Assembly: GCA_035221665.1 (NCBI GenBank)
Contig: CM069172.1
Coordinates: 5,208,038 to 5,272,000 of the forward strand
Length of the DNA stretch: 63,963 nucleotides
Direction: 5' to 3'
DNA from: Okamejei kenojei
Lineage: Eukaryota
Shown: piece by piece, positions 9,193-46,746 of the stretch
How the letters are laid out: every line of letters starts with the position of its first letter
Numbering within the stretch: the stretch's first letter is position 1
Notes under the pieces: model-generated
Told to the model about the DNA's origin: nothing
The model's input: only the letters and a program-made list of their open reading frames with translations
Databases searched by the model: none
Program-made: the position numbers and the translations under genes

Positions 9193-9561
9193 TAGTAACA
9201 CTGAGCTGTGTTACAGGGTGGTAGTTGTAACGATTTCCCCCTCCAAAATCAACTCTGAAAAAATAAGGACCTGCATCTTGCTGCGTGACGTTGTCTATAA
9301 CCAGGGAACAGTCGTTGTCTGTCAGGACTCCTGACAGCCGGGTCCGATGCTGAAACTTTGCTGATTCTAGACTGGGATTCCCGGAGTGGAAGGCGACAGA
9401 ATCTTCGTCGTACAGCTTCTCACTGTTATACCAGATTCCAGTCCGTGGTTTATTGTTTAGATTCGACGGGTACGTGTAGCGACACGGAATCCATGCACAT
9501 AAACCATTCTGCGCTGTCACAGCTTGTGGAGTGTCCGCACCCCCACTCTCCGACACCACGG
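9193..9561 (-). CDS. Siglec/MAG-like gene (left copy): V-set exon
   Basis: 369 nt, AG/GT bounded, open frame; DAGPYFFRVD keeps the essential Arg. ESG for GEW comes from two compensating G-run indels, probably sequencing error. Confidence 0.92.
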
Positions 9562-9694
9562 CTGAGGAGAGAAGGAACAATCTTTAGCAGTGAACACCCT
9601 GTCAGTTCACTGGGACTTTCCACACCTTTATCCTGCGCTGTGGACCTGGTGTGAACAGAGCGTAGAAAGAGCGGCATCGTGGTGTAGTGGTAGA

Positions 9695-10512
9695 GCCTCC
9701 CCCCCTCACCGCCCCTCCCCCAGTGATCACTCCCCCCTCACCGCCCTCCCCCAGTGATCACTCCCCCCTCACCCCGCCCCTCCCCCAGTGATCACTCCCT
9801 CCTCACCGCCCCTCCCCCAGTGATCACTCCATCCTCACCCCTCACCGCCCCTCCCCCAGTGATTCACGTCCCCCCTCACCGCCCCTCCCCCAGTGATCAC
9901 TCCTCCTCACCGCCCCCTCCCCCAGTGATCACTCCCTCCTCACCGCCCCTCCCCCAGTGATCACTCCCTCCTCACCGCCCCTCCCCCAGTGCATCACTCC
10001 CTCCTCACCGCCCCTCCCCCAGTGATCACTCCTCCTCACGCCCCTCCCCCAGTGATCACTCCCTCCCTCACCGCCCCTCCCCCAGTGATCACTCCCTCCT
10101 CACCACGCCCCTCCCCCAGTGATCACTCCCTCCTCACCGCCCCTCCCCCCCGTGATCACTCCCTCCTCACACCGCCCCTCCCCCAGTTATCACTCCCCCT
10201 CCCCGCCCCTCCCCAGTGTATCACTCCCTGCTCACCGCCCCTCCCCCAGTGATCACCCTCCCTCCTCACCGCCCCTCCCCCAGTGCATCACTCCCCCTCC
10301 CCAGTGCTCACTCCCCCCTCACCGCCCCTCCCCAGTGCATCACTCCCCTCCTCACCGCCCCTCCCCCAGTGATCACTCCCTCCTCACTGCCCCTCCCCCC
10401 AGTGATCACTAACTCCTCACCGCCCCTCCCCCATGATCACTCCCTCCTCACAGCCCCCCCCAGTGATCACTCCCTCCTCACACCGCCCCTCCCCCAGTGC
10501 ATCATCTCCCAG
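9695..10512 (-). repeat. 32-33-bp GC-skewed minisatellite (~25 units) in the leader-to-V intron of the left gene
   Basis: Unit cccctcccccagtgatcactccctcctcaccg with variants. Confidence 0.95.
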
Positions 10513-10543
10513 TAAACAATACTGAGTTTGCTGCTGATGGTAC

Positions 10544-10583
10544 CTTGGAGAAGGGAGAGGAGGAAGAACGATCTCCCGATCAT
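10544..10583 (-). CDS. Siglec/MAG-like gene (left copy): signal-peptide exon
   Basis: Identical coding sequence to 45778-45817 on the minus strand. Confidence 0.85.
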
Positions 10584-10679
10584 TGTCCGATCACAGATTT
10601 CCCATCAGTTTACCCGATCTCCCGGTCTGGAAGAGAAGAGTTATTTCAGTAAAACTCCAGCAACCAATATACATTAAGC

Positions 10680-11262
10680 AACATGGATGCAATGCTGAGG
10701 CTCTATGAGGTGCTGGTGAGAGCCACATTTGGAATATTGTGAGTAATTTTGAGACCCTGTATCTGATGAAGGATGTGCTGGCTCTGGAGAGGGTCCAGAG
10801 GAGGCTTACAAGAATGGTCCCAGGAATGAGTGTGTTTACATATGAGAGCGTTTGACTGCACTGGGCCTGTACTAGCTGGAGTTTAGAAGAATGAGGAAGG
10901 ACCGCATTGAATCTTACCGAAATAGTGATAGGCTTGGATAGAGTGGATGTGGATAAGACTTTTCCACTAGTGGGAGAGGTCATGGGCCTCAGAATTAGAT
11001 TTTCTTTTAGGAAGGAGATGAGGAGGAATACATTTAGTGAGAGGGTGGTGAATCTGTGGAATTCTTTGCCACAGAAGGCTGTGGCGGCCCAGTCAGTGGA
11101 TATTGTTAAGGCAGAGATAGATAGATTGTGAATTGTAAGGGTGTCAGGGTTATGGGGAGAAGGCAGGAGAATGGGATTAGGAGGGAGAGATGGATCAGCC
11201 ATGATTAAAAGGCGGAGTCAATTTGATGGGCTGAATGGCCTAATTCTGCTCCTATCACATGT
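10680..11262 (+). mobile_element. CR1/HER1 3' fragment
   Basis: RPHLEYC-like region and RVVNLWNSLP motif, then 3'UTR; mirror at ~45105-45685. Confidence 0.8.
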
Positions 11263-11879
11263 CCGTAATTATCACCAACATCATACGTTGCACCAACTAC
11301 ATTGGAAGCTGTGGTCAATAAAGCAAACTGATGTCTCATCTTGCTCAAAAGATGAAGGAAGTTCAGCATTTCTCCAGTGATTCACACCAACTTCTCCACA
11401 TGAACACTGTTGGGTTGCATCACACTTTGGTTTGGGACCAGCTCTGCCCAAGACCACAAGAAATTGCTGAGAGTTTAGTTTAGAGATACAGCACAGAAAC
11501 AGGCTCCCACGGCCCAACGTCTCCGCGCCGACCATCGATCACCCGTTCACACACCATTCTATGTTTAGTCTAGAGATGCAACGTGGAAACAGGCCCTTCG
11601 ACCCACCGAGTCCGTGCCGACCAGCGATCCCCGCACACTAACACTATCCTACACACGCTAGGGACAATTTACAATTTTGCCAAGTCAATTAGCCAACAAA
11701 CCTGCATGTGATTGGAATGTGCGAGGAAACCAGAAAAACCCAAGCAGGTCAAGAGTCCAGATTCAAGAATGTTTTATGTCACATGTCCTGGATAGTACAA
11801 TGAGATTCCTTACTTGCAGCAGCACAAAACAATATGTAAACGGGCAAACTCCGCACAGGCAGCGCCCAAAGTCAGGATG

Positions 11880-12210
11880 TGGGGGAGGGGTGTGGGGGAG
11901 GGGTGTATGTGGAAGGGGTTTTGTGGGGGAGGGGGGTGAGGGGAAGGGGTGTAAGGGGAGGGGGGGTGTAAGGGAGGGGGTGTAGGGACGGGTGAGGGAA
12001 GGGACGGGTGAGGGAAGGGGGGGGTGTAGGGGAGGGGGGTGAGGGGAGGGGGGTGTAGGGGAGGGGGCGTGTGGAGGGGCATGTTAGGGGGAGTGTGGGG
12101 TGGGGGGGGTGTGGGGAGGGGGGATGTGGGGAGGGGGGTGAGGGAAGGGATGGGTGAGGGAATGGGGGGTGTAAGGGAGGGGGGTGAGGGGAGGGGGTTT
12201 GTAGGGGAGT
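11880..12210 (+). repeat. G-rich low-complexity tract, absent from the right arm
   Basis: Right arm reads straight through at ~44575. Confidence 0.8.
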
Positions 12211-24303: not shown

Positions 24304-25394
24304 TGTGTGTATGCCAAACCTGTAATGTCTTAATAAAAACGTTTGTGCACACATTTGGACATTTTGTGACCCAGACGATCCAAAATGGTATTTTGGATTT
24401 TCCGTTATGGATACAGCCAACTACTCCAAGCTGCAGCACGATGCCGCTGGTGACAGCCTCAACGCGCTCCTGTAACGTACCTCTGGGCTCCGCCACTGCG
24501 ATCGGGCCGCTTGACTCTTGTCTATGATTGGTCTCGGCGATCGCAGGCCGTCCAGGTCAATGGGCGTGATCCAAGCCTTGATTGACGACCTCCGGCCTGC
24601 CTTCCGATCGTGCATGTTTACCTGGGGCAGATGCCCGATTGCATCCGCCTGCTCCTCGCTGGTGCAGATTTTGATAGTCCCCAGCCGATGGCTGCCTGTA
24701 CAGTCGAGCTGTGGCCGGCCCAGCAGCAGGGTGGAGCCTCGGTCAGTCCTGTGTTGGCCGTACCACGACGGATTCAATGGCCCATGGCCAGGACGGGCCA
24801 TGGCCCAAGCTCCTCCCGGTCCTGGCCCAAGGCCGCCAGTTCCTGTCTCCACTGAGGGTGTGGCAGTGCAGCCGGTTTTGAGTGCACCTAGTGAAGTTAC
24901 GTGCTTCTCCCATCTCCAGCGGTGGAGTTCTGAGGCCCATCGAGGCTGACCGTACTGCAAATATGCGGGAAACGCCTCGGCCAACCGCCAGTAATGGCTG
25001 CTGCTGCGGCCGGCCAGCACCATCGCCTCTACGTTGGGAGACCGGCTTTCCGAGAGGTCTTCTGTAAATAAGCAATTCACATACTCTTAAAGTGTATGAC
25101 ATCCTTTAATGATAGCACAGGGTATAACACACGTCAGCAAGCACTGGTTACATTCTTCGACTGACTGCCCAGCGAGGGGAAAGCATTATGATTGATGTTA
25201 ACTAAGGCGGGGTTAACGGTACTGAGACAGCTATATTATTGGTTGCATGTATGAACCATCTACAACCTTCCCCTTAGAAAATCAAAACAGATTGGAAGTC
25301 ATGACAACAGAATTAAACAAAATCGCCATAACGAACAGGTGGCTTACTAATCCGACCCGAGCGTGTACGCGTGTCTCCCCCTTCCCCCGAAAGA

Positions 25395-28282
25395 TCAGAA
25401 GAAACAGGGGGCCGCGAAACAGCTGGGGAACCAGAGAAGGGCAGTGGGTGGTTGAAGCAGAAGAGTCAGAACCGCGAGCGGCAACAGAGGGGAACAGGGC
25501 GCGCGGTATGGGGACCAAGGCATGCAGGGAACACTGGCTGGGATGGCAGCCAGCTGTTGGTATGAGAGTGGCGGGGCATAGGGGCCCGGAGGCTGCGGCT
25601 TCGGCTCATTAACCGCAAGCAGGTGTTGACGACTTCTTCGGTAGATAGTTCCCTTGAAGTCGACCAGGTACGAACGAGGTGAATTGGCAACCCCAACCAC
25701 GGTAGCCAGACGGGAGTAACCACTGGCGGACTGCAACCGAACAACCTGTCCAGTCAACAGAGGATCGAGTGGTCTGCACGACCGATCATGGGAACGCCGT
25801 TGGCTGTCATGTTTCTCTTGAATGCGCCTCTGCACGGAGGCGGGCTCCAGCACCCGAGGTTGCAGCTGGCGCTGAGCAATCGGGATGGTTGGTCTGGTTG
25901 TTCTGGACATCAGACGCTGAGCAGGTGACCCCATGGCCGGATCCCTGGAAACGTTCCTGAGGTTCAGGAGATCCAAATACAAATCAGAGTTAGACAGTCT
26001 TGCCCGTTCCATCAGAAGCTCGGCGCTGCGGACGGCCCGTTCAGCAAGGCCGTTGCTCTGTGGGTACTCTGGGCTGCTGGTGAAATGCACGAAATTCCAC
26101 TTGTCGGCAAAACATTTGAATTCTCGGCTGGTAAACTGCTTGCCGTTGTCAGTCTGCAGCCGGACAGGGGACCCAAAAGTGGAGAAGTGTTTCCGCAGCT
26201 TACGGATTACCATCTCTAAGGTGAGGGATGTCAGCAAATCCACCTTGAACCAGTTTGAGTACGAGGCGACCAGGACAAGGTAGTGGTTACCACGCCACTC
26301 GATGATGTCAGCAGCTAACGAGGACCAGGCCAAGGCAGGAGCAGGTTGTTGCAGCAGGGGCTGTCGCTGCTGGTGTGGAGCAAGACTGTTGCACGTGGAG
26401 CAGGCAGAAACGCAGTCCCGGATATACTTGGCCATTCCAAGCCAGTAGAATTGGCACTGAGCGTGGGCGAGTGTTGCGTCGACCCCAGGGTGTCCGCTAT
26501 GGGCTGCGCAATAGTAAAAGTCAAACAGGGACGACGGGACTACAACTTTATGTCCCTTGATGATAACGCCATCCTGTACCACCAGTTCGTCGCGGACCAG
26601 GAAGAAAGGCTGTGTTTCAGTCGGCGCGCTGGAGCGCTTTGTTGGCCACCCCGATTTAATCACAGAGGCAAGCCGCTGCAAAACTGGATTGGCAGCGGTG
26701 TGCTCGGCCAAAAGCTGTAACTGCTTGGTGGGAATAAAGTCAACACCCAGTACTAGCAAGTCCTCTGTTTCGTAGGGGTGGCGGGCACAGGAAATCCGTG
26801 GGGTGCGGGATAGGGTGTCCAAAATGTGCATCTCGGTGCCCTTCTTGTAGATAACGTTGAAATCGAAACGCTGAAACTGCAGCATCATACGCTGCAGCCT
26901 GGCAGGGGCAGCGTGAATCGGTTTGTTCAGAATTGTCACCAGTGGCTGGTGGTCGGTTTCAACCGTGAATCTGCTGCCAAACAGGAAGTCTCTGAACTTG
27001 GAGCAGGCGAACACTACCGCGAGCAGTTCCTTCTCGATCTGAGCATAACGCTGCTCGGTGTCCGTCATGGTGCGGGAGGCATAGGAGACAGGATGTAACG
27101 ATCCATCGACAGACTGAAGGCAGGCCGCGCCCAGACCGAATTTGGAAGCGTCACAGGTGACGGTGATGGGGCGACTCACGTCGAAGAACCTCAAAGTCGG
27201 TGTGTTAATCAATCTGGACTTGAGACAGTCAAAGGCCTGCTGGTGTTGTGGGAACCAGGCCCAGGCGATATCCTTTTTTGTCAGCTGCCGCAGAGGTGCA
27301 CTCAGCTCACTGAGATTTGGTATAAACTTCCCAAGGTAATTCACCATGCCCAGGAAGCGTTGCAGACCTGGCACGTTGGTAGGGGCAACCATCTCAGAGA
27401 TGGCAGCTGCCTTCAAAGGGTCGGGTTTTAGTCCGTTAGAGGTGAAAACATGTCCAACATACGTGACTTCTGAAACACGAAACCGGCACTTCTTGGGATT
27501 CAGTTTCAGGTTGGCCCATCGCGCCCGATCCAGGACGCGGCGGAGGTTCAGGTCGTGCTCGGCAATGTCCTTCCCATAAACCAGGATATCATCCACGATG
27601 ATGGCACATGGCAGGCCTGAGAATATCTGCTCCATCGTTCGCTGGAACACCTCGCTAGCGGAATTGATGCCGAATGACATTCGCAGAAACTTTGCCAAAC
27701 GGTGTGGAGAAGGTCGTCAGATCAGAAGACGCTTTGTCCAATGGAATCTGCCAAAATGAGTTCTTAGCGTCTAGGACCGAAAAGATGGTGGCCTGCCCGA
27801 CCTGAGCCGCCACGTCCTCAACAGACCGCATGGGGTAGTGGGGGACGCCTGGTGGCAAGGTTTAAGTCCTTCGGGTTGATGCACACGCGTATTTCATTCT
27901 TGTCTTTCTTTAGCGTGGCAACCATGGTGGAGACCCAATCGGTGGGCTTGCCAACTGCCTCTAGCACCCCCATTTTGACCATGTTGTTGTTCATCGCCTC
28001 GACCTTGTCTTTCATGGCGTGAGATACCCTGTGCGGGGCGCGGACCACGGGCGTCACATGTGGGTCAATGGAAATATGGTAAGCCAGTGGTAACTTTCCC
28101 AGGTCATCGTTGAACAGGTCCTGGTATTCTGCTACTGGATCAAACGACAGTTGCACTTTGTGGACCGTGCGGTCGAACGACACCAGGCCAAGATCCTGGC
28201 ACGCACGGTTGCCCAGCAGAGTCACACAGTCAGAATTCAAAACATAAAAAAAACAGGTTTCATGTGGCCTTTTGCAGCACAC
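25395..28282 (-). pseudogene. pol: Gypsy Pol (RT, RNase H, integrase) split by frameshifts near 27855 and 27695
   Basis: LDAKNSFWQ, IIVDDILV, CDASKFGLGA, YAQIEKELLA, TDHQPL, HHCC, TDNGKQF, PQSNGLAERAV. Confidence 0.92.
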
Positions 28283-29393
28283 AAGTTAAGGTGGCCCTCC
28301 CCACCGGCCTGAGAATTTCTCCTCCATAGGCATGCAGAGTAGAATTGTCAGCAATCAGGGGCTCATTATTCCTTATCTTGTTGAAGAGGTTTATTGACAA
28401 AACGATGTCCTTTGCACCAGTGTCTAACTTAGCAAGGAAGGTCACATCATTGACAGTTACAGATACGGTGGGATCAGAACGTTGGCCAGGTGCATGGAGG
28501 AGAGTAAACACACTCAACTCCTCCAGAGAACTAATTGGATCTGCATCGTAGGATTCTGCTATGTAGGGCTGTGAGCTGTAACAGTCATCAGATTGTGTCA
28601 GCCTGTTTAGATTAGGTCTGGAAGTCTGTGCAACTGTCCCACGGGCCCGACAGACTGCAGAGAAATGATTCAATTTTTTACAAAAGTTGCAGGCCTTAGC
28701 ATAGGTGGGGCACGTCGACAGTCTGTGTTGCATGCAGTTACAGTTCAGGCATTTCTTGGGGGGCATTTCGCCAGGACCTGGGTTGGCACGCGGCAGAAAA
28801 GCAGTGTTTCCCATCCGAGGCTGCAGTCTCTTAAACCCAGCCAGGTTGATAGATTTAGTGCCCGAATCACGGTGGTCATCTGGCAATTCAACGACCTCAG
28901 ACATTCTGCAGGCATGCATAGCTTTGGCTAATGTTAGATCCGAATCCCTTAGAAGCTCACAACGCAACTTCTGGTCACGCATGCCTGATACTGAAATGTC
29001 TCTAGTGAGCTGGTCTGTCATGTCACCGAAATGGCACCACTGGGCAAGATGACGCAAATCAGCAATGAAACATTCAACAGGTTCATCTGGCAACTGTTTC
29101 CTTGTAAAAAACCGTGCTCTCTCTAGAATGCGGTTCGAGGGCAGGTCGCAAATCTCCCTGAACTTACGTAGCAGGCAAGTGGGGTCACTGTCTGATTCTG
29201 CAGGAGTAGGCACCACGTTATTCTCGTCCAGGACCGCTGGAGCGTAGGTGAAGGTTCTGGCTCTCCTCATGGCATCAGGTCCGACAAGGTTGAGGAGGAG
29301 GGAGGCTTTAACGGAGTCAGGTTCGGCTGACAAAGTGGGTGAAATCAAATTCAAACGTGGCCCAGCGCTCAGAGATGTCAGCATCAAAGACAA
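28260..29393 (-). CDS. gag: Gypsy Gag (CCHC knuckle) and aspartic protease
   Basis: CNFCKKLNHFSAVC zinc knuckle; AKLDTGA protease motif. Confidence 0.88.
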   Translation of the reverse strand: MSLMLTSLSAGPRLNLISPTLSAEPDSVKASLLLNLVGPDAMRRARTFTYAPAVLDENNVVPTPAESDSDPTCLLRKFREICDLPSNRILERARFFTRKQLPDEPVECFIADLRHLAQWCHFGDMTDQLTRDISVSGMRDQKLRCELLRDSDLTLAKAMHACRMSEVVELPDDHRDSGTKSINLAGFKRLQPRMGNTAFLPRANPGPGEMPPKKCLNCNCMQHRLSTCPTYAKACNFCKKLNHFSAVCRARGTVAQTSRPNLNRLTQSDDCYSSQPYIAESYDADPISSLEELSVFTLLHAPGQRSDPTVSVTVNDVTFLAKLDTGAKDIVLSINLFNKIRNNEPLIADNSTLHAYGGEILRPVGRATLTCVLQKAT

Positions 29394-30468
29394 GCTGCGC
29401 GGGCTTTCTGCAAGAAGACGCCATGGCCAGAGAGATTAAGCACAAATAGGCACAAAATCAAAAGAAAGAAATAAAACCCGATAGACAGGAGACGCAGGTA
29501 TCTTCCAGCTTCGGCGCCATGTAAATAAGCAATTCACAAACTCTTAAAGTGTATGACATCCTTTAATGATAGCACAGGGTATAACACACGTCAGCAAGCA
29601 CTGGTTACATTCTTCGACTGACTGTACCCAGGGAGGGGAAAGCGTTATGATTGATGTTAACTAAGGTGGGGTTATAGGTACTGAGGTAGCTATATTATTG
29701 GTTGCATGCATGAACCATCTACACCTTTCTTTGTCCACACGGGAGCAGCGGTGAGCATTTTGCACCGTCTGGGGGGGTCGACGCTCGTTCTGGGCTGCCG
29801 GGCCTTGCTCTGGCCTCCGTCAATGACATCCCAACCAGACATCCGGTGTATGCACAGATTGTTTTCATTTTCGACTCCTGTTGCTTGTCCATGTTCTTTC
29901 CTTATTGCTGACGTCTAACAGCCACTGCTGGGCGCTGATTTTTTTTTTTCCTGGCACATCACCAGCTGGGCGATGAGAAGGGACAGCATCTCACCCCTTC
30001 TGCAGGTTTGCCTTGGTCTCCTTGCAACCCACGGCCGGGAGGGCCCACAGCCAGAGCGCCGACTGCGCCCGCGGGCCCCACAGTCTTGACCCACAGCCGG
30101 GGTGCCCATGGACCCACAGCAGGAGCCGCCCTCAACCATGCTGGCACACCTTCCGGATGAAGGAGGGGCTTGCTCTTTTTTGTTTCACTGTCCCGCCCGC
30201 TTCTGCCCTCAAGTACTCCCTGTGTGTCTATCTAATGTGACTTTTATGCTCGACATGGGTGGTTCGTCTTCAGCCCACTAATTTAGGACATTGGTCAGCC
30301 TGTACAGAAGACCCAGTGTTGTCGTCGGGGCTGTCTGTGTTCTGCCCACTTCCACTCTCATTTTGCCGGTTGTGTTTCCGAGCGCGCGTGTTGTGTTTAC
30401 AAGTTCAGGCCATCTTGTTTCGTCTGCCTGCTCGTTTTCATTCCTCCGGTTCTGGAGGGGGAATCATG

Positions 30469-30487
30469 TGGTGCCACCTGGTGGTCA
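30469..30487 (-). promoter_or_regulatory. CTCF-like motif at the start of the old Gypsy 3' LTR
   Basis: Minus strand reads TGACCACCAGGTGGCACCA, close to the CTCF core consensus. Confidence 0.55.
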
Positions 30488-31815
30488 AGCCACTTACTGA
30501 TCGAACCCTCGTCACCAGAACTGGAACAGTCATGTGACTGCGTTTGGCAGGAGGAGAACTTCATCAGTTAAGGGGTGGGTCCTACAACAACAGAAACGTA
30601 GCTCGATATCGCATGTTAACAACCTCGCTCGGCAGCAGCAACAATGACTTTTTGTCAGAGTGTACCAAACACGTGTGTATGCCAAACCTGTAATGTCTTA
30701 ATAAAAACAGCATTTGTACATAACGGTTGGACACTCTACAATCTGTCATAAAAATGTCTGTTATCATGAGGGTATACGGTTGAGAGGGTGAATTTAGTTG
30801 AGCAAGGAACCACAAATGCTGGCTTAAACCAAAGATGGACACAAAAAGCTGGAGTAACTCAATGGGTCAGTTTAGTTTAGTTTAGTTTTGGGGTACAACG
30901 TGGAAACAGGCCCTTCTGCCCAACCAGTCCGCGAAGACCATCGATCACCCATTCACACTAGGTATGTGTTTATAGTTAATAGACAATGGACAATAGACAA
31001 TAAGTACAGGAGTAGGCCACTCGGCCCTTCGAGCCAGCACCACCAACACTGTCATCGTGGCTGATCATCCACAATCATTACCCCATTCCTGCCTTCTCCC
31101 CATATCCCTTGACTCCGCTATCTTTAAGAGCCCTATCTAACTTTCTCTGGAAAATATCCAGAGAATTGCCCTCCACTGCCTCCTGAGGCAGAGAATTCCA
31201 GATTCACAACTCGCTGGCTGAAAGGGTTTTTCCTCATCTCCGTTCTACATGGCCTACCCCTTATTCATAATCTGTGGTCCCTGGTTCTGGACTCCCCCAA
31301 CATCGGGAACAGGTTTCTTGCCTCCAGCATGTCCAATCACTTAATAATCTTATATGTTTCAATAAGATCCCCTCTCATCCTTCTAAATTCCAGTGTATAC
31401 AAGCCCAGTCACTCCATTCTTTCAACAATTCACAGTCCTGCCATCCAGGGAATTATCTTTGTGAACCTACTCAATACCTACTTTGTGAACACTCCCTCAA
31501 TAGTAAGAATGTCCTTCCTCAAATTTGGAGACCAAATACTCACACAATACTCCAGGTGTGGTCTCACTAGGGCCCTGTACAATTGCACAAGGACCTCTGT
31601 GCTCCTATGTTCAACTCATCTTGTTAAGAAGGCCAACATGCCATTAGCTTTCTTCGCTGCTTGCTGTAACTGCATGCTCACTTTCAGTGACTCCACAAGG
31701 ACACCCAGATCTTGGTGTACTTCCCCTTTTCTAACCATATAACAATTACAGCACGGAGACAGGCCCTCTCGGCCCTTCCAGTCCGTGCCGACCATTTGTT
31801 TTCCCCTAGTCCCAT

Positions 31816-34620
31816 CTACCTGCACTCAGACCATACCCCTCCATTCCCTTCACGTCCAATATACCTATCCACTTTACTTTTAAATGTTAAAATCGATCCT
31901 GCCTCCACCACCTCTGCTGGAAGCTCATTCCACACAGCCACCACCCTCTGAGTAAAGAAGTTCCCCCTCACGTTACCCCTAAACTTCTGTCCCTTAATTC
32001 TCATGTCATGCCCTCTTGTTTGAATCTTCCCTACCCTCAATGGGAAAAGCTTATCCACGTCAACTCTGTCTACCCCTTTCATCATTTTAAAGACCTCAAT
32101 CAAGTCCCCCCTTAACCTTCTGCGCTCCAAAGAATAAAGACCTAACTTGTTCAACCTTTCTCTGTAACATAGTTGCTGGAACCCTGGCAACATTCTAGTA
32201 AATCTCCACTGTACTCTCTCTATTTTGTTGACATCCTTCCTATAACTAGGCGACCAAAATTGTACACCATACTCCAGAATTGGTCTTACCAATGCCTTGT
32301 ACAATTTTTAACATTACTTCCCTACTCCTATATTAAATGCTCTGATTTATAAAGGCCAGCACACCAAAGGCTTTCTTTACCACCCTATCTACATGCGATT
32401 CCACCTTCAGGGAACTATGCACAGTTATTCCTAGATCCCTCTGTTCCACAGCATTCCTCAATTCCCTACCATTTACCATGTACGTCCTATTTTGATTTGT
32501 CCTGCCAAGATGTAGCACTTCACACTTATCAGCATTAAACTCCATCTGCCATCTTTTAGCCCACTTTTCCAAATGGCCCAAATCTCTCTGTAGACTTTGA
32601 GAATCTACTTCATTATCCACAATACCACCTATCTTAGTATCATCTGCATACGTACTTATCCAACTTTCCACCCCATTATCCAGATCATTGATGTACATGA
32701 CAAACAACAGTGGACCCAACACAGATCCCTGAGGCACCCCACTGGTCACCGGCTTCCAACCTGACAAACAGCCATCCACCATTACTCTCTGACATCTCCC
32801 ATTCAGCCACTGTTGAATCCATCTTGCTACTCCGCCATTAACACCCAAAGATTGAACCTTCTGAACCAACCTTCCATGGGGAACCTTGTCAAAGGCCTTA
32901 CTGAAATCCATATAGACAACATCCACTGCTTTACCCTCATCATTTCCCTAGTTACCGCTTCAAAAAATTCAAGAAGGTTTGTCAAACATGACCTTCCAGG
33001 CACAAATCCATGTTGACTGTTCCTGATCAGACCCTATTTATCCAGATGCTTATATATATTATCTCTAAGTATCCTTTCCATTAATTTTGCCCACCACTGA
33101 CGTCAAACTAATAGTCTATAATTGCTAGGTTTATTCTTTGAACCCTTTTTAAACAATGGAACAACATGCGCAGTACGCCAATCCTCCGGCACTATTCCCA
33201 TTTCTAATGACATTTGAAATATTTCTGTCATAGCTCCTGCTATTTCTACACTAACTTCCCTCAATGTCCTAGGGAATATCCTGTCAGGACCTGGAGACTT
33301 ATCCACCTTTATATTTTTCAAAAGTGTCAGTACTTCCTCCTCTTTGAATCTCATAGTTTCCATAGCTACTCTACTTTTTTCCCTTACCTCACAGAGTTCA
33401 ATATCCTTCTCCTTGGTGAATACCGAAGAAAAGAAATTGTTCAATATCTCCCCCATCTCTTTTGGATTGGCAGATAGCTGTCCATTCTTGTTCTCTAATG
33501 GTCCAATTTTATCCCACGTTATCCTTTTGCTATTAATTAGCTGTAGAAACCCTTTGGATTTACTTTCACCTTTCTTGCCAAAGCAACCTCATATCTTCTT
33601 TTAGCCTTCCTAATTTCTTTCTTAAGATTATTTTTACATTCTTTATACTTCTCTAGCACCTCATTTACTCCATGCCTCCTATAATTATTGTAGATATCTC
33701 TCTTTTTTCGAAACAAGTGTCTAATTTCCCTTGAAAACCATGGCTCTTTCCAATTTTTTACTATTTCCTTTCAACCTAACAGGGACATAAAGATTCTGTA
33801 CTCTTACAATTTCCCCTTTAAATGTCCTCCATTTCTCTTCTACATCCTTCCCATGAAACTAAAGTGTCCCAATTCACTCCTTTAAAATCCTCACGCATTC
33901 CCTCAAAGTTAGCCTTTCTCCATCAAAAATCTCCACTCTAGGTCCTGTTCTGACTCGCTCCATAATTATATTGAAACTAATGGTATTGTGATCACAGGTC
34001 CCGAAGTGCTCACCAACGCATACCTCCGTCACCTGTCCTGCCTCATTTCCTAACAGGAGGTCCAGCACTGCCCCTTCTCTGGTCGGTACCTCTATGTACT
34101 GCTGCAAAAAACTATCCTGCACACATTTTACAAACTCCAAACCATCCAGCCCATTTACAGAATGTGTTTCCCAGTCTATTTTTGGGAAATTGAAATCTCC
34201 CACAATCACTACCTTGTGCTTACTACTAATATCTGCTATCTCCTTACATATTTGCTCTTCCAATTCTCGCTCCCCATTTGGCGGTCTATAGTACACCCCT
34301 AAAAGTGTTGCTACACCGTTCCCACTTCTCAGTTCCACCCAAATAGCCTCCCTAGACGAACCCTCTAATCTATCCTGCCAAAGCACTGCTGTAATATCCT
34401 CTCTGACAAGCAATGCAACACCTCCACCTCTGGTCCCTCCAATTCTATCACCCCGGAAGCAACGAAATCCTGGAATATTTAGTTTCCAATCACAGCCCTC
34501 CTGCAACCATGTTTCACTGATTGCCACAACATCATATTTCCAGGTGTCAATCCAGGCTCTAAGTTCATCCACCTTACTTACAATGCTCCTAGCATTAAAA
34601 ATATGCACATTTTATAAACC
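31816..34620 (-). pseudogene. CR1 ORF2 (APE endonuclease and reverse transcriptase), frameshifted
   Basis: NARS, ISETWL, GGGVA, YYRPPN, GDFN, CDH; DFSKAFDKVPH, VPQGSVLGP, YADDTK. Confidence 0.92.
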
Positions 34621-34759
34621 CACCATCCTTTATTCTCTGTCTATTATCTTTTTCATCTTTCTCGCCTACATTTTGGGTCCGAGTGCTTCCCTTCTCTGTC
34701 TCTTGGCCCACACCCTGTCCCCTAGCCCCCCCTCTACCCGAGTCCCTCCCCCCAGCCTT

Positions 34760-35691
34760 TCTAGTTAAAGTCTCCCCAGTAGCCTTTGCAAATCTTCCTG
34801 CCAGGATATTGGTCCCCCTCGGGTTCAAGTGCAACCCGTCCTCTGCGTACAGATCATACCTTCCCAAAAGAGGTCCCAGTGATCAAGAAACTTGAATCGC
34901 TGCCCACTGCACCAGTCCCTCAGCCACGCATTTAGCCTCCACCTCATTTCATTCCTACTCTCACTGTCACGCGGCACAGGCAGTAATCCTGAAATCGTTA
35001 CCCTTTTGGTCCTTCTCTTTAACTTTCCCCCCAACTCCCTAAATTCTCCCTTCAGGACCTCGTCACTTTTTCTGCCTATGTCATTGGTACCTATGTGTAC
35101 CACAACATCAGGCTCTTCTCCCTCCCTTATCAGAATCTTTTGGACACGTTCTGACACATGCGAGACCCTGGCACCAGGGAGGCAAACTACCATCCGGGTC
35201 TCCCGACTGCGTGCACAGAATCGCCTATCCGACCCCGTAACTATAGAGTCCCCTATTATAATTGCCCTCCTCTTTTTGCTACCCTTCTGAGCATCAGGGC
35301 CGGTCTCTGTGCCGGAGGCCCGGACGCTGTTGTTGCCCCCAGCTAGGCTGTCCCCTCCAATCGTACTCAAACCCGAGTACCTATTTTCCAGTTGTACGGT
35401 CACAGGGGTACTCTCTAGCCCCTGCCACTGCCCCTTGCCCTTCCTAACCGTGACCCACTTGTCTGCCTCCTGTGGACTGGGAGTGACTACCTCCCTGTAG
35501 CTCCTCTCTATGACCTCCTCACTCTCCCTGACCAGACGGATGTCGTCGAGCTGCTGCTCCAGGTTCCTAACACGATCCTTTAGGAGCCCCATCTCGACAC
35601 ACCTGGCGCAGATGTGTACGTCTGGAGGGCTGTCAGATTCCCTGACCTCCCACATCTGACATCCAGAACAGTACACTGCCCTGGCCTTCAT
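34760..35691 (-). CDS. CR1 ORF1: zinc finger, coiled coil and SGNH/GDSL esterase (frameshift near 34865)
   Basis: CxxC...CxxC; IIIGDS; PGARV; VHIGTND; DGLHLN in the next frame. Confidence 0.88.
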
Positions 35692-35887
35692 ACTTCCCCC
35701 TTACACAAGATACAATAGCAACACAATATAAAAACACTACAAACTGCTGGGATCTGACTGTAAATCAGCTGCTTTCCCTAGTCCCACTTCCCACCAATCA
35801 GCTGCTTTCCCTAGTCCACTTCCCACCAATCAGTGGCTTCCTCAAAAAAAAACCCACTTCTCCAAATGGAATGTTATGGATTTCGGT

Positions 35888-36297
35888 AAAAACAAGCCCC
35901 GCGCTAGATTTTATAGCTTACCGGTCGGGTGTCGCTCCTCCCCCTCCTCCTCTTCCAACGGCTCCTGTGGGCCTCTGAAAAAACAAGCCCCGCGCTAGAT
36001 TTTATAGCTTACCGGTCGGGTGTCGCTCCTCCCCCCCCCCTCCTCCTCTTCCAACGGCTCCTGTGGGCCTCTGAAAAAACAAGCCCCGCGCTAGATTTTA
36101 TAGCTTACCGGTCGGGTGATGCTCCTCCCCCTCCTCCTCTTCCAACGGCACCTGTGGGCCTCTGAAAAAACAAGCCCCGCGCTAGATTTTATAGCTTACC
36201 GGTCGGGTGTCGCTCCTCCCCCTCCTCCTCCTCCTCTTCCAACGGCTCCTGTGGGCCTCTGAAAAAACAAGCCCCGCGCTAGATTTTGAAGCTTACC
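35888..36297. repeat. Tandem ~90-97-bp monomers (4 full plus 1 partial) in the CR1 5'UTR
   Basis: aaaaacaagccccgcgctagatttt recurs at about 35888, 35978, 36074, 36165 and 36262. Confidence 0.93.
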
Positions 36298-37224
36298 AGT
36301 TCGGTAAGCTTCAAAATCTAGCGCGGGGCTTGTTTTTTCCTACCTTAATACCATTCAGATAATAATCTGTCTTCCTGTTCTTGCCATCAAAGTGAATAAC
36401 TTCACATTTAGCCACATTAAACTGCATTTGCCATGCATCTGCCCACACACCCAACCTGCCCAAGTCACCCTGCATCCTTATAGCATCTTCCTCACAATTC
36501 ACACTGCCACCCAGCTTTGTGTCATCTGAAAATTTACTAATGTTACTTTTAATCCCTTCATCTAAATCCTTAATGTATATTGTAAATAGCTGCGTTCCTA
36601 GCAACGACCATTACGGTACCCCACTAGTCACTGCCTGCCATTCTGAAAGGAACCCGTTAACCCCTACTCTTTGTTTCCTGTCTGCCAAACAATTTTCTAT
36701 CCATGCCAGTACTCCACCGCCAATACCATATGCTCTAATTTTGCCCACTAATCTCCTATGTGAGTCGTTATCAAAGACTTTCTGAAAGTCCAGGTACACT
36801 ACAGCCACTGGCTCTCCCTTGTCCATTTTCCTCGCTATATCGTCAAAAAATTCTAGAAGATTAGTCAAGCATGATTTTCCCTTTGTTGATCCATGCTGAC
36901 TCTGACCGATCCTGTTACATCTTTTAAAATTGACTCCAGCATCTTCCGCACCACCGATATCAGGCTAACTGGTCTATAATTCCATGTTCTTAAAAAGTGG
37001 AATAACATTAGCTACCCTCCAGACAAGAGACATGCCGGTTGTACTTTGGCAGTACACCCCGGATGTCTCCGGCTACAATGACCAGGTCACCGTGGACTTG
37101 GTGGGCCGAAGGGCCTGTAACTGCGCTGTATCTCTAAGGTAAACAAAGTAACAAATAAGTACAAATTGCTCTCATTTGTACATGAGTACCAAAAAATCAT
37201 ATTTAATGTAATAATTTTAGTCAA

Positions 37225-37685
37225 CAAGTTTATTCGTCACATACGCATTTGAGATGTGCAGTGAAATGAAAAGTGGCAATGCCTGCGGATTGTGCAAAAA
37301 ACTACAAAACAGAATGAACAGAGTCAGTAATTACATATTTGTGGAAAAAAAAGAAAAAACAGCAATTTAAAAAAGACACCACACAGTAAATTGGTCCAGT
37401 AAATTAGTCCCCAGTGAGATAGGAGTTTACAGTCCTAATGGCCACTGGGAAGAAACTCCTTCTCATCCGCTCTGTTTTCACAGCATGGCAACGGAGGCGT
37501 TTGCCTGACCTTAGCAGCTGGAACAGTCTGTTGCTGGGGTGGAAGGGGTCCCCCATAATGTTGCTGGCTCTGGATCTGTACCTTCTGATGTATAGTTCCT
37601 GCAGGGGGGGCAAAATGTAGTTTATCTTCAGTCGTGTGTATGTCCTTGGATGTTGTGCCCTCCTAAAGTCCACGATCAGCTCCTT
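37225..37685 (-). mobile_element. Rex1/Babar-type LINE 3' fragment
   Basis: KELIVDFRR; HPSNRLFQLLRSGKR...SFFP.AIR. Confidence 0.75.
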
Positions 37686-37975
37686 AGTTTAGTATAGTTT
37701 AAAGATACAGCGCGCAAACAGGCCCTTCGTCCCACCGAGTCTGCACCGCCCATCAGTCCCAGCACTATCCTACACTCAGTAGGGACAATTTATATTTATA
37801 CCAAGCCAATTGACCTACAAAACTGGAATGTGGGAGGAAACCGATGAACTCGGGGAAAATACACGCAGGTGACGGAGAGAAGGTACAAACTCCATATAGA
37901 CAAGCATAGTCAGGATCAAAGCTGGGTCTCTGGTGCTGTAATGTGGTAGCTCTACCGCTGCTCCACCTTGCCTCC
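37686..37975 (-). mobile_element. HE1/V-SINE-type SINE abutting the duplication breakpoint
   Basis: Same head, V-domain and tail as 5272-5580. Confidence 0.75.
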
Positions 37976-37984
37976 TGCCCGAAT

Positions 37985-38371
37985 GCCCGATCGCAGTGGC
38001 GGAGCCCAAAGGTACGTTACAGGAGCGCGTTGAGGCTGTCACCAGCGGCATCGTGCTGCAGCTTGGAGTAGTTGGCTGTATCCATAACGGAAAATCCGAA
38101 ATACCATTTTGGATCGTCTGGGTCACAAAATGTCCAAACGTGTGCACAAACGTTTTTATTAAGACATTGCAGGTTTGGCATACACACGTGTCATTGTTCT
38201 TGCTGTCGAACGAGGTTGTTGACTCGCGATCTCGAGCTAAGTTTCTGCTGTTGTAGGACACACCCCTTAACTGATGACCTTCTCTTCCCGCTAAACGCAG
38301 TCATTTGACCGCTCCAGTTCTGTTGATAAGGGTTCGATCAGTAAGTGGCTTGACCACCAGGTGGCGCCACA
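37985..38371 (-). mobile_element. Complete 5' LTR (38131-38371), PBS and gag start of the old Gypsy element, duplicated copy
   Basis: Reverse complement matches the LTR at 30467-30733 and the segment 24304-24507. Confidence 0.82.
38351..38369 (+). promoter_or_regulatory. CTCF-like motif in the LTR
   Basis: TGACCACCAGGTGGCGCCA. Confidence 0.6.
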
Positions 38372-38449
38372 GATTTTGTTTCTGTCGGACTGACCTGCCG
38401 ACTAATGTCGATGCTTTTGCACCGCCTCCTTACTGCCTCTCGGTCTAGT

Positions 38450-38790
38450 ATGAATATTGATTTCTCTAACTTCAAGTAACCCCTGCATTCCCTCCCTCCC
38501 CCACCCAAGTCGTACCAGCATCACGTTCTCACCTATTAAACTGCTAACAATGGCTTGGTTCCTTTACCATTAGTACTATTTTTACGTATCTTTCATTAAT
38601 TTGTTTTATATCTCTCTACATCACCGTCCATATCTCTTGTTTCCATCTCCCCTGACTCTCAGTCTGAAGAAGGGCCTCGACCCGAAACGTCACCCATTCC
38701 TTCTCTACAGAGATGCTGCCCATCCCGCTGAGTTACTCCAGTACTTTGTGTCTAACCCCCACAGATCCGCTGAGTTCCTCCAACACTTTG
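38450..38790 (+). mobile_element. Penelope-like terminal fragment with hammerhead-like core
   Basis: MNIDFSNF end of ORF, then CTGAAGA-agggcc-tc-gaccc-GAAA-cg-TC at 38664-38691. Confidence 0.6.
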
Positions 38791-38799
38791 CCTGAAGAC

Positions 38800-40191
38800 A
38801 GCTACCATAGTGCCAGTGCCAAAAAGTCTAAGGACTACCGCCCGGTTGCCCTAACTCCAATACCAATGAAGTGCTTTGAAAGGCTGGTCCTCTCCCACAT
38901 CAAATCCAGCATCCCTGCATCATTGGACTCTCATCAATTTGCATACAGGGCAAATAGATCCACAGAGGATGCCCTCTCTGTGGCTCTTCACACTGTCTTG
39001 ACCCACCTGGAAAGACAGGGCAGCTACGTAAGGATTCTCATCATTGATTATAGCTCTGCCTTCAATACGTTCATCCCCACCAAGCTCACCACCAAACTCC
39101 ACCAGCAAGGCCTCAGCTCACTGATATGCGATTGGATCCTGAACTTCCTGACGGAGCGACCGCAAGCAGTGAGACTGGAGCCGCATCTGTCCTCCACTAT
39201 CACCCTGATCTGTGTACTGTGTCCCATGCTGTACTCCCTCTTCACTCACGACTGTGTTCCTGCATTTGACACCAACACCATTGTCAAGTTTGCAGATGAC
39301 ACAACGGTGATCGGGTTGATCACCAACGGTGATGAAACAAAGTACAGAGCGGAGGTGCAGAACCTGGCGGACTGGTGCTCACAGAACAACTTGTCACTAA
39401 ACACCTCCAAGACCAAGGAGCTGATTATTGACTTCAGGAGGTCACAGAATGGGGAATACGCCCCAATCTCCTTCTATGGAGACAGTGTGGAGAGAGTGTC
39501 CAGCTTTAAGTTTCTGGGCACTCACATCTCAGAGGAGCTCACATTGTGCACCAACACCGCTGCGCTGGTCAAAAAGGCACTGCAACGACTGTTCTTCCTA
39601 AGAACATTGAAACGGACTAGTCTGCCCCAACAGCTGCTGACGACATTCTACCACTGCACGACAGAGAGCATACTAACGTATGGCATTTCTGTGTGGTATC
39701 TCAGCTGCACGGAGGCCGGAGAGAAGAGCTCTTCAGCGCGCCATCCACAGAGCTCAAAAGATCATTGGGGCACCGCTACCAGCCTTGGAGGGCATCTACC
39801 ACACCCGGTGCCTTAGGAAGGCCGTCAGCATCCATAAAGACCCTTGTAATGGACTGTTCGAACTACTCCCTTCCAGCAGTCGCTACAGGGCCTTCTACAC
39901 CCGCACCTCCAGACTCAGGAACAGCTTCATTCACAGAGCTATAGCGGCTTAGAAACGGCCCTGCTGAGTGCTCCCCACCCCTATGGACTGTCTCCCTCAG
40001 ATGGTCATGTCGCACAAACACATCTGCACCTTAGTCTGTTTTGGTTTTGACTGTTTTACTGTTCTAATGTACTTTCACTAACCTTGTTTTCGGGGTATCT
40101 AAATCTACATTTTATTCATCGTTTAAGTTATGACATCGGATGGAGTTGCAAACTTAATCTCGTTGCACTTATGTGTAATGACAATAAAATA

Positions 40192-40234: not shown

Positions 40235-40359
40235 TCCTCAATGAATAAAGAGAGTGTTTTGCACCCTCACCTCTGAGGAACTCATATTGAATGGCAGTGC
40301 AGGCTCGAAGGGCGGAATGGCCTGCTCCTGCACCTAATTTCTATGTTTCTGTTTCTATG

Positions 40360-43440: not shown

Positions 43441-43449
43441 ACCGTTTGC

Positions 43450-43605: not shown

Positions 43606-45777
43606 GTACGTAATTCCGTGTCTGTCGCTCGTTCCCACGAACAACCACCAGTTCAGCTGAGTTGCGACTTTGTGCAGAGTCTGATCACTGAAATATTTTG
43701 TGTATTAATGTAACTACAGATGCTGGTTCACACCGAAGATAGACACAAGGCGCTGGAGTAACTCAGCGGGAGAAGAAGTATCTCTGGGTAGAAGAAGGGT
43801 CTTGACCCGAAGTGTCACCCATTTCTTCTATCCAGAGTCTAGAGATATGGAAGGGTAAGGTGTGAAAACCTATTCCTTCTCTCCAGAGATGCTGCCTGTC
43901 CCATTGAGTTAAGCCAGCATTTTGTGTCTAACCGGTTTAAACCAGCATCTGCAGTTCCATCCTACACATGATTACAATTGTTCCATTTACAGTGTACAGA
44001 TAGGGGAATAGCGTTTAGTGCAAGGTAAAACCAGCAAAGTCTGATCAAGGATAGTCCGAGGGTCATCAAAAAGGTAGACAGTAGTTCAGCGCTGCTCTCT
44101 GGGTGTAGTAGAATGATTCAGTTGCCTGTAACAGCTGGGAAGAAACTGTCCCCGAATCTGAGAATTGGAGAGACGGAATGGGTGATGTTTTGGGTCAAGA
44201 CCGTTTTTTAGACTGAGAGTCAGGGGAGAGAGGGAGGCACAGAGAGAAGGAAGTGAAGGTGTGAAAACAAGACAAAGGGAATGAGGTTGGATGAAAATGT
44301 AGAATAAATCATTGTTAGCTAGGAGAAGGTGACAACGAAGCAAACACAGATAAGATTTAATCAAGGGAACGGTCAGACTGGTCGTAGAATAGGAAAGGGG
44401 AGGGATGGAGAAAGAGGGAAAGCAAGGCTACAAAGTTAGAGAAGTCGATAATCGTACCGATGTAAGCTGCCCAAGCGAAATATGCGGTGCTGTTCCCTAA
44501 TTTGTGTTGGGCCTGACTCTAACAGTGAAGGAGGCCCAGGACAGAAAGGTATCTCTGTGTCTCCCTCACTCCCCTATTAAAACATTCTTGAATCTGGACT
44601 CTTGACCTGCTTGGGTTTTTTTCTGGCTTCCTCACACATTTCAATGACATGCAGGTTTGTTGGCTAATTGACTTGGCAAAATTGTAAATTGTCCCTAGCG
44701 TGTGTAGGATAGTGTTAGTGTGCGGGGATCGCTGGTCGGCACGAACTCGGTGGGTCGAAGGGCCTGTTTCCACGTTGCATCTCTAGACTAAACATAGAAC
44801 TAGTGTGTGAACGGGTGATCGATGGTCGGTGCAGAGACGTTGGGCTTTGGGAGTCTCTCTGCTATAGCTCTAAACTAAACTAAGCTCTCAGCAATTTCTT
44901 GTGGTCTTGGGCAGAGCTGGTCACAAACCAAAGTGTGATGCAACCCAACAGTGTTCTTTCACAGTTCATGTGGAGAAGTTGCTGTGTCACTGGAGAAATG
45001 CCAAATTCCTTCATCTTTTGAGCAAGATGAGACATCAGTTTGCTTTATTGACCACAGCTTCAATGTAGTTGGTGCAGTGTATGTTGTTGGTGATATTTAC
45101 GGACATGTGATAGGAGCAGAAATTAGTCCATTCAGCCCATCAAATCTACTCCGCCTTTTAATCATGGCTGATCCATCCCTCCCTCCTAATCCCATTCTCC
45201 TGCCTTCTCCCCATAACCCCTGACACCCTTACGATTCACAATCTATCTATCTCTGCCTTAACATTATCCATTGACTGGGTCGCCACAGCCTTCTGTGCCA
45301 AAGAATTCCACAGATTCACCACCCTCTCACTAAATATATTCCTCCTCATCTCCTTCCTAAAAGAAAATCTAATTCTGAGGCTATGACCTCTCCCACTAGT
45401 GGAAAAGTCCTATCCACATCCACTCTATCTAAGCCTTTCACTATTCGGTAAGATTCAATGCGGTCCTTCCTCATTCTTCTAAACTCCAGCTAGTACAGGC
45501 CCAGTGCAGTCAAACGCTCTCATATGTAAACACACTCATTCCTGGGACCATTCTTGTAAGCCCCCTCTGGACCCTCTCCAGAGCCAGCACATCCTTCATC
45601 AGATAAAGGGCTCATAATTACTCACAATATTCCAAATGCGGCCTCACCAGCGCCTCATAGAGCCTCAGCATTGCATCCATGTTGCTTAATGTATATTGGT
45701 CGCTGGAGTTTTACTGAAATAACTTTCTCTTCCAGACCGGGAGATCAGGTAACTGACGGGAAATCTGTGATCGGACA

Positions 45778-45817
45778 ATGATCGGGAGATCGTTCTTCCT
45801 CCTCTCCCTTCTCCAAG
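45778..45817 (+). CDS. Siglec/MAG-like gene (right copy): signal-peptide exon, MIGRSFFLLSLLQ
   Basis: Acceptor ttccag at 45735, ATG at 45778, hydrophobic leader, phase-1 donor G|gtacca; joins in frame to AVVSGEWG. Confidence 0.85.
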
Positions 45818-45848
45818 GTACCATCAGCAGCAACTCAGTAGTGTTTAC

Positions 45849-46246
45849 GGGGAGTGATGCACTGGGGGAGGGGCGGTGAGGAGGGAGTGATGCACTGGGG
45901 GAGGGGCGGTGAGGAGGGAGTGATCACTGGGGGAGGGGCGGTGAGGAGGGAGTGATGCACTGGGGGAGGGGCGGTGAGGAGGGAGTGATGCACTGGGGGA
46001 GGGGCGGTGAGGGAGGGAGTGTGATCACTGGGGGAGGGGCGGTGAGGAGGGAGTGATGCACTGGGGGAGGGGCGGTGAGGAGGGAGTGATCACTGGGGGA
46101 GGGGCGGTGAGGAGGGAGTGATCACTGGGGAGGGGCGGTGAGGAGGGAGTGATCACTGGGGGAGGGGCGGTGAGGAGGGAGTGATCACTGGGGGAGGGGC
46201 GGTGAGGAGGGAGTGATCACTGGGGGAGGGGCGGTGAGGGGGGGAG
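45849..46246 (+). repeat. 32-33-bp G-rich minisatellite (~12 units) in the leader-to-V intron of the right gene
   Basis: Unit ggagggagtgat(g)cactgggggaggggcggtga. Confidence 0.95.
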
Positions 46247-46380
46247 GCTCTACCACTACACCACGATGCCGCTCTTCTACGCTCTGTTCACACCAGGTCC
46301 ACAGCGCAGGATAAAAGGTGTGGAAAGTCCAGTGAACTGACAGGGTGTTCACTGCTAAAGATTGTTCCTTCTCTCCTCAG

Positions 46381-46746
46381 CCGTGGTGTCGGGAGAGTGG
46401 GGTGCGGACAATCCACAAGCTGTGACAGCGCAGAATGGTTTATGTGCACGGATTCCGTGTCACTACACGTACCCGTCGAAACTGAACAATGAATCACGGA
46501 CTGGAATCTGGTATAACGGTGATAAGAAGAACGAAGATTCTGTCGCCTTCCACTCCGGGGATCACAGTCTAGAATCAACAAAGTTTCAGCATCGGACCCG
46601 GCTGTCAGGAGTCCTGAGAGACAACGACTGTTCCCTGGTTATAGACAACGTCACGCAGCAAGATGCAGGATCTTATTATTTCAGAGTTGATTTTGGAGGG
46701 AAAGATTGTTACAGCTACCACTCTGTAACACAGCTCAATGTTATTG
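46381..46746 (+). CDS. Siglec/MAG-like gene (right copy): V-set sialic-acid-binding domain exon
   Basis: cag| ... |gtaagt, 366 nt, phase 1-1. Siglec V-set motifs: W-G near N-terminus, GLCxxIPC, IWY, DCSLVI, DAGSYYFRVD (F-strand Arg) and G-strand YSY. Confidence 0.93.

Follow-up and report, generated by a model that had tools for sequence, protein, structure and literature searches.

Excess non-synonymous change in the V exon of two head-to-head Siglec-like genes of the skate Okamejei kenojei

The analysed window is a stretch of 63,963 nt from Okamejei kenojei (assembly GCA_035221665.1, contig CM069172.1, positions 5,208,038-5,272,000 of the forward strand). It contains two head-to-head Siglec-like (MAG/CD33-like) genes lying within an inverted duplication of ~23 kb, one gene in each arm (Table 1). 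The exon encoding the V-set domain, which in Siglecs binds the ligand, was found to differ between the two copies almost exclusively at non-synonymous sites, while the leader exon and the first C2 exon (C2a) are identical or nearly so.

Both V exons are bounded by AG and GT and are in phase 1. Their translations (122 amino acids in arm 1 and 121 in arm 2) differ at 26 aligned residues and by one codon indel, giving an amino acid identity of 78.5%, and just two codon changes, CTA/CTG and GGT/GGA, are purely synonymous. According to the nucleotide alignment, arm 1 reads ESG and arm 2 GEW at residues 4-6 owing to a compensated +1/-1 frameshift across three codons, which in arm 1 deletes the family-invariant Trp6. 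Outside these residues 23 differences remain; a first-pass annotation of the window had counted about 23 substitutions, a codon indel and about 2 synonymous changes, and these figures were reproduced. The clusters it described in the B-C loop, C-C' loop and F-G region were recovered both by alignment and on the strand map of a structural model (see below), with three differences falling within the B-C loop.

The surroundings of the V exon are far more alike. The leader exons are identical (40/40 nt), and C2a differs by three non-synonymous changes and one synonymous change in 97 codons (97% amino acid identity; non-synonymous divergence, dN, 0.014; synonymous divergence, dS, 0.014). The 129 nt upstream of V carry no substitutions and three one-base indels. 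Downstream, 102 nt are free of substitutions, the first mismatch lying 103 nt beyond the exon, and intron 2 overall is 3.5% diverged. The identical leader, the 3/97 changes in C2a and the near-identity of the introns beside V had all been noted from the letters. The broader earlier statement that the neighbouring exons are nearly identical is accurate for the leader, C2a and the second C2 exon (C2b), but not for the 3' part of the arms, which is 5-16% diverged.

All rate figures for V leave out the frameshifted codons and the indel codon. The Nei-Gojobori method gave 2.0 synonymous differences (Sd) at 81.7 sites and 25.0 non-synonymous differences (Nd) at 269.3 sites, corresponding to a dS of 0.025 and a dN of 0.099. 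In a pairwise maximum-likelihood codon model of the Goldman-Yang type, omega (dN/dS) was 5.9 (likelihood-ratio statistic 8.66 versus omega = 1, p = 0.003), compared with 0.47 in the control, C2a and C2b taken together. Given the local transition/transversion ratio, the expected synonymous share of random changes in V was 28.5%, and the probability of observing two or fewer among 27 was 0.0075.

Non-coding DNA within the arms (42.1-48.4 kb), compared copy against copy, was mismatched at 153 of 4973 sites (3.1%; distance 0.031), and this divergence was mildly over-dispersed (1.39). Non-synonymous sites of V exceeded it (Fisher's test, p = 3e-6) and also exceeded the non-synonymous sites of C2a and C2b (p = 7e-7); synonymous sites of V showed no difference from non-coding DNA. 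The intron-based test presumes that V and the DNA next to it share the same young age; the test within the exon is free of that assumption. The per-exon dN/dS comparison, which the first-pass annotation had put forward as a check, thus came out on the side of its claim. Relaxed constraint alone was rejected, the non-synonymous rate of V being above both the synonymous and the intronic rates. Hypermutation of the AID type, a test prompted by tandem substitutions in shark immunoglobulin (Ig) genes, was also unsupported (WRCY/RGYW enrichment, odds ratio 2.8, p = 0.086; WRC/GYW, p = 0.24).

The V domain is a Siglec domain. It matched Pfam V-set (5e-14) and Ig_CD22, and a phmmer search against PDB sequences returned MAG (3e-18) and sialoadhesin (5e-15), followed by Siglec-8, CD33 and Siglec-5, -10, -7 and -15. 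The AlphaFold2 (AF2) model of the arm-2 V domain had a predicted local distance difference test score (pLDDT) of 89.9. In a Foldseek search with this model the top 46 matches were all Siglec V domains (template-modelling score, TM, 0.86 for MAG). The essential Arg (YYFRVD in arm 2, YFFRVD in arm 1) aligned to MAG R118 and sialoadhesin R97; it is present in both copies, as had been recognised earlier, and conserved in at least 90% of 44 family sequences. Trp6 of arm 2 aligned to sialoadhesin W2, an N-terminal aromatic residue which, together with the G-strand aromatic, we take to contact Neu5Ac. Tyr110 is kept by both copies; Trp6 is kept by arm 2 and lost by arm 1. Three cysteines, C21, C26 and C83, are invariant or nearly so in the family and align to MAG Cys positions; they would pair as a B-/E-strand disulfide and a bond to domain 2. 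Separately, codon 109 of arm 2 (46707) carries R109C, which gives an extra, presumably unpaired Cys in the G strand beside the ligand site. The DCYSY motif of arm 2 also occurs in three Hypanus sabinus family proteins.

The ligand site of MAG is built from the C-C' loop, the F strand and FG/G, with R118, Y65, Y127 and T128 as key residues (PMC5150538). On the strand map of our model, the C-C' loop (residues 46-53), the F strand (96-104) and FG/G (105-120) comprise 33 of the 121 residues; the codon indel and 12 of the 26 differences map there (Fisher's test, p = 0.024; p = 0.008 when the frameshift residues are excluded). The family as a whole is hypervariable at the positions that differ, with a mean column entropy of 1.86 bits versus 1.02 bits elsewhere (p = 4e-5). 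On the predicted fold, the non-synonymous excess of V is concentrated on Siglec ligand-site elements.

The same contrast between domains was found among relatives, which are predicted proteins of skates, rays and sharks under mixed NCBI names (MAG-like, Siglec-5/8/10/12/13, CD33-like). Each copy has 75-78% identity to the closest annotated V domains, those of Amblyraja radiata, compared with 78.5% between the copies, and C2a is 89-90% identical to A. radiata relatives versus 97% between the arms. In 97 pairs of closely related family proteins, the divergence of V was two to six times that of C2a. For close paralogs from Amblyraja, Leucoraja and Hemitrygon, V amino acid distances were 0.20-0.29 against 0.04-0.05 for C2a; in two Amblyraja paralogs, for example, divergence was 27% in V and 4% in C2a. 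Judged from these predicted proteins, the window pair is one instance of a family-wide pattern. A search of the 90% cluster protein database with the V exon alone gave one candidate within the length range covered, an uninformative Amblyraja fragment with 72% identity.

Polarity was judged against 40 V domains of the family. Seven derived states fall on arm 1, namely the ESG shift (3), R23W, an additional Leu within the C-C' loop, A66 and T79. Five fall on arm 2, G46, S97, C109, S111 and S114, mostly beside the Arg. In a related organism (organism B), a contig spanning the junction of intron 1 and V shows both T10 and R23 and is free of the frameshift, which supports this polarity.

Read evidence was obtained by aligning contigs of public runs to arm 2, and it refers to the differing sites that were listed. 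The exon stretches of arm 2 are covered by many short paralog contigs. At 46411, 46518, 46523, 46670/1, 46707 and 46744, arm-2 letters were found at about single-copy depth in run X1, like an arm-2-specific contig. Arm-1 letters at these sites (46411-46744) were the majority type in every run and were present in all three DNA runs. In organism B they were the sole type at the listed sites, save for 46744, where the arm-2 letter was present at minority depth. Because the arm-2 states occur at about single-copy depth in X1 and are absent from organism B apart from 46744, they are real and recent and belong to about one copy, which speaks against a common paralog as their source. Two same-species samples from different studies contained contigs matching arm 2 exactly, of 217 and 230 nt, the 230-nt contig, in intron 2/C2a, being from the independent sample X4.

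The exon map was based on homologous elasmobranch proteins and splice sites, and exons were searched one by one (Table 1). As assembled, arm 1 is an apparently decaying copy, at best truncated, because a frameshift in its C2b exon leads into a stop codon and indels have destroyed its membrane-proximal Ig exon. Its V exon has lost Trp6, gained W23 and acquired a C-C' loop longer by one residue. Arm 2 looks like a working gene, with intact Ig exons, a transmembrane exon and unique derived changes beside the Arg. The decay of arm 1 went unnoticed in the first-pass annotation, which implied two working receptors with different glycan specificities. Since arm 1 is apparently decaying, with Trp6 lost in addition to the C2b and Ig lesions, that implication is unlikely to hold.

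Table 1. Features of the two gene copies and of the inverted duplication, with positions counted from the first letter of the window.
Feature	Position	Strand	Details
Arm 1, inverted duplication	1257..24304		gene on minus strand; self-BLAST, 85-97% identity to arm 2
Arm 2, inverted duplication	39680..58668		gene on plus strand; includes arm-2-only insert ~50127-53926
Unique spacer between arms	24305..39679		~15 kb, many retroelement open reading frames (ORFs)
Arm 2 leader exon	45778..45817	+	MIGRSFFLLSLLQ plus 1 nt; fits family N-termini; identical to arm 1
Arm 2 V-set exon	46381..46746	+	366 nt, 121 codons; Trp6 and Arg101 kept; changes around F and G strands: S97, Y99, K107, D108, C109, S111, S114
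Arm 2 C2a exon	47203..47496	+	Pfam C2-set_2
Arm 2 C2b exon	48374..48655	+	intact
Arm 2 extra C2b-like exon	53113..53394	+	within arm-2-only insert; 250/282 identical to C2b
Arm 2 membrane-proximal Ig exon	55945..56238	+	intact ORF, 294 nt, phase 1; GG replaces AG
Transmembrane exon downstream of arm 2	62883..62976	+	tblastn match to P0248; predicted membrane span without charged residue
Arm 1 leader exon	10544..10583	-	
Arm 1 V-set exon	9193..9561	-	369 nt, 122 codons; open ORF, Arg102 kept
Arm 1 compensated frameshift	9540..9551	-	first G-run one G shorter, second one longer; GEW to ESG
Arm 1 C2a exon	8440..8733	-	intact
Arm 1 C2b exon	7292..7574	-	283 nt; three one-base indels, net +1 shift, premature stop
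Arm 1 membrane-proximal Ig remnant	3510..3812 (about)	-	at least 10 indels, no open frame

In both copies GG stands for AG before the membrane-proximal Ig exon (CTCCGG/ATG in arm 2, 55939-55946; CTCTGG/ATG in arm 1, 3812-3818). As this exon is intact in arm 2, with 294 nt and phase 1, skipping it would preserve the frame. The 4-kb insert found only in arm 2 (50127-53926) reflects one of two events, the duplication of an exon inside arm 2 or the deletion of the segment from arm 1. The arm-2 tail, with its cytoplasmic exons, falls past the end of the window, and the 3' exons of arm 1 are decayed or fall before its start. In the relative P0248, the tail contains a VxYxxL motif.

Divergence between the arms is a mosaic, being ~3% in the 5' half, 7.6% at 48656-49926, immediately 3' of C2b, and 5-16% from 55.6 kb onward. 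The window contains no N runs. A fold-back or haplotig artefact was ruled out, as the arms are separated by kilobase-scale indels and 3-16% divergence. The spacer includes an ORF for a 767-amino-acid Ty3/gypsy-type pol (25395-27698, minus), one for a LINE reverse transcriptase with an ALKBH8_N-like match (38713-39816, plus) and one with a GDSL/OSK domain (34825-35691, minus). Intron 1 of both copies holds a tandem array of 32-33-bp units (9700-10510; 45850-46243). Arm 1 has ~25 of these units, with a homogeneity of 84-89%, and arm 2 has 12, with a homogeneity of 96%. The intronic stretches 46742-47151 and 47562-48299 reached summed contig depths of 10^5-10^7 in all DNA runs and in a putative RNA run; they are very-high-copy interspersed repeats common to related species. 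The translated motif RPFGPS(S/T)LPFNHG flags further copies of the high-copy intronic repeat elsewhere in the window. The outer arm ends (1-2000; 58000-60000) show mirrored skewed composition (GC skew -0.67 and +0.56) and bear G-rich degenerate tandem repeats, e.g., at 59103-59375.

We consider it probable, at roughly 0.6, that the pattern stems from diversifying selection acting on the ligand face since the copies were recently duplicated or homogenised, with arm 2 as the working copy and arm 1 as the decaying one. The 5' halves, from promoter to C2b, would then share a last common ancestor at ~3% neutral divergence, reached by duplication or by arm-to-arm conversion. Since that time the V exon would have accumulated amino acid change at ~3x the neutral DNA rate, with synonymous sites staying at the neutral level. 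Selection would act on the C-C' loop, the F and G strands and the B-C loop while retaining the essential Arg, and the same diversification process would extend across the whole batoid family. Altered recognition of sialoglycans or pathogens may be the selective cause, and the V variants may have been supplied by point mutation or by short-patch import from paralogs. The first-pass annotation had proposed diversifying selection or conversion from other paralogs. The non-synonymous excess on which it drew is real and lies on the predicted ligand-site elements; the two processes are not separated by these data, and the "or" stands.

Several observations weigh against selection on the ligand face. 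The argument is based on a single pairwise comparison with just 2-3 synonymous events, and Fisher's test on the Nei-Gojobori (NG86) counts within the V exon gave p = 0.027 (one-sided). Given the mosaic divergence of the arms, were V as old as the more diverged blocks, its dN would be about neutral, and selection would then be argued by the synonymous deficit alone. Arm 1 is pseudogene-like, so that part of its change is unconstrained drift, and its one-base indels lie in homopolymers and are known from the assembly alone. At 15 of the 27 differing sites both residues are common among the other paralogs. Paralogs with at least 85% similarity are numerous in the genome, with contigs across the V exon in every DNA run. 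X4 did not show the arm-2 letters at 46670/1 or 46744, which may reflect contig drop-out or allelic polymorphism of the V exon. Among the matches listed, no RNA contig exactly matched either copy.

The abundance of paralogs leads to the first alternative, patchwise micro-conversion from family members, which would have made most of the V differences, their non-synonymous bias being inherited from selected donors. Both states being common at more than half of the sites among the 40 family V domains fits such a process, as does the recurrence of the motifs GNPSLE / GDHSLESTKFQH, LCAWIPC and DCYSY in paralogs of other batoids. So do the abundant similar contigs over the exon, the sharp end of divergence at its edges and a tendency of the differences toward close pairs (11 neighbour gaps of <=4 nt, p = 0.058), although this clustering is not significant. 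We nevertheless regard this explanation as unlikely. None of the listed organism-B contigs has the arm-2 states G46, D47, S97 (along with the synonymous change next to it) or C109, which occur at about single-copy depth solely in X1, so no common donor carries them. Donors with ~85-90% nucleotide identity should also have brought synonymous differences, and just 2 are present; tblastn found no second V exon in the window beyond the pair. Even under micro-conversion, the non-synonymous bias would reflect selection at the level of the family.

A bolder proposal, which we hold to be quite unlikely, is an "anti-concerted" regime in the evolution of elasmobranch Siglec-like clusters. Conversion between arms would homogenise promoters, introns and C2 stalk exons, with V excluded or re-diversified, and decaying copies such as arm 1 would serve as a reservoir of V variants for patchwise conversion into working genes. 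If true, such a regime would be a germline mechanism of glycan-receptor diversification ~450 million years older than the arms race of mammalian CD33-related Siglecs.

We rate as improbable that the V exons are simply older than their surroundings, arm-to-arm conversion having homogenised the rest and spared V by chance or selection, so that the divergence is old and largely unconstrained. The mosaic divergence of the arms, the substitution-free flanks of 129 and 102 nt and the decay of arm 1 are compatible with such a history, and the dN of V is near the divergence of the older blocks. However, the dS of 0.025 fits the young blocks, the probability of two or fewer synonymous changes being 0.012 at 10% divergence and 0.04 at 8%. 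The within-exon omega above 1 (p = 0.003) is independent of any assumption on age, and for conversion to bypass precisely this one exon while reaching both of its flanks, selection is needed anyway. Finally, an assembly artefact, in which the V versions are wholly or partly mis-assembled paralog mixtures or uncorrected read errors, is suggested by the highly multi-copy family with its very-high-copy intronic repeats, the homopolymer-length changes among the arm-1 lesions and the arm-2 states missing from X4, but is scarcely credible given the depth of the arm-2 state in X1 and the presence of the arm-1 state in all three DNA runs at the listed sites, the exact arm-2 contigs in two independent same-species samples, the confinement of substitutions to one exon with clean flanks instead of scattered errors, and the kilobase-scale indels between the arms.

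Mammalian CD33-related Siglecs characteristically evolve fast in their sialic-acid-binding domain, a feature usually attributed to a Red-Queen race with changing self-sialomes and sialic-acid-mimicking pathogens. Rapid evolution of the first Ig domain (Ig1) is thus already known for Siglecs, and the elasmobranch lineage is new for it. The fish literature that we searched credits fish with just four conserved Siglecs. A teleost study, limited to teleosts, found fish genomes without CD33-related Siglecs (PMC7226832), a 2025 review of vertebrate sialoglycan-binding proteins makes no mention of sharks or cartilaginous fish, and our full-text literature search found no paper on elasmobranch Siglec expansions. 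Considered alongside the equivalent contrast between V and C2 in further rays and skates, the skate pair suggests that cartilaginous fish independently expanded a Siglec-like family that evolves like CD33-related Siglecs. The pair is also a natural experiment, with the same stalk, the same Arg and ~25 changes around the binding site, and is suited to mapping the positions that set sialoside specificity.

In primate CD33-related Siglecs, e.g., great-ape Siglec-9, Ig1 is far more divergent between species than the C2-set Ig2, as reviewed in PMC6288428 with reference to Sonnenburg 2004 and Altheide 2006. The skate genes resemble them in combining a fast sialic-acid-binding-type domain with a conserved C2 neighbour, in retaining the Arg and in belonging to a clustered multigene family in which pseudogenes are frequent. 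In contrast, the skate case concerns two young paralogs in one cartilaginous-fish genome and not orthologs, and the best structural matches of its family are MAG and sialoadhesin, not CD33. With MAG (Siglec-4, PDB 5LF5) and sialoadhesin (Siglec-1, 1QFO) the skate V domain shares the fold (TM 0.83-0.86), the F-strand Arg, the B/E-strand Cys pattern with an extra Cys and, in arm 2, the N-terminal Trp. It differs from them in having only ~30% identity and no MAG WxxW mannosylation motif, and the skate genes belong to a large lineage-specific expansion instead of being conserved single-copy orthologs.

Among immune receptor families, restriction of omega above 1 to the ligand-binding domain of duplicated genes is familiar from the MHC peptide-binding region, KIR/Ly49 and CEACAM. 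The skate pair appears to share with these systems the non-synonymous excess at contact loops, the reuse of hypervariable positions and the interplay of conversion and selection, but its fold context and ligand class (sialoglycans) are different. In the primate paired Siglecs (Siglec-5/-14, Siglec-11/-16), the ligand-binding region has been homogenised by repeated gene conversion (PMC6288428). Like them, the skate genes are tightly linked duplicates with signs of sequence exchange, and one partner in such pairs is often a null allele or pseudogene. Paired Siglecs are recognised by opposite signalling modules, with a charged transmembrane segment in one partner and an ITIM tail in the other, and by near-identical ligand-binding domains, whereas in the skate pair V is 78.5% identical, compared with 97% for C2a and 100% for the leader. 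The earlier description of this pair as the reverse of the primate situation was apt: here V is the most diverged exon, and the introns and C2 exons are the most alike.

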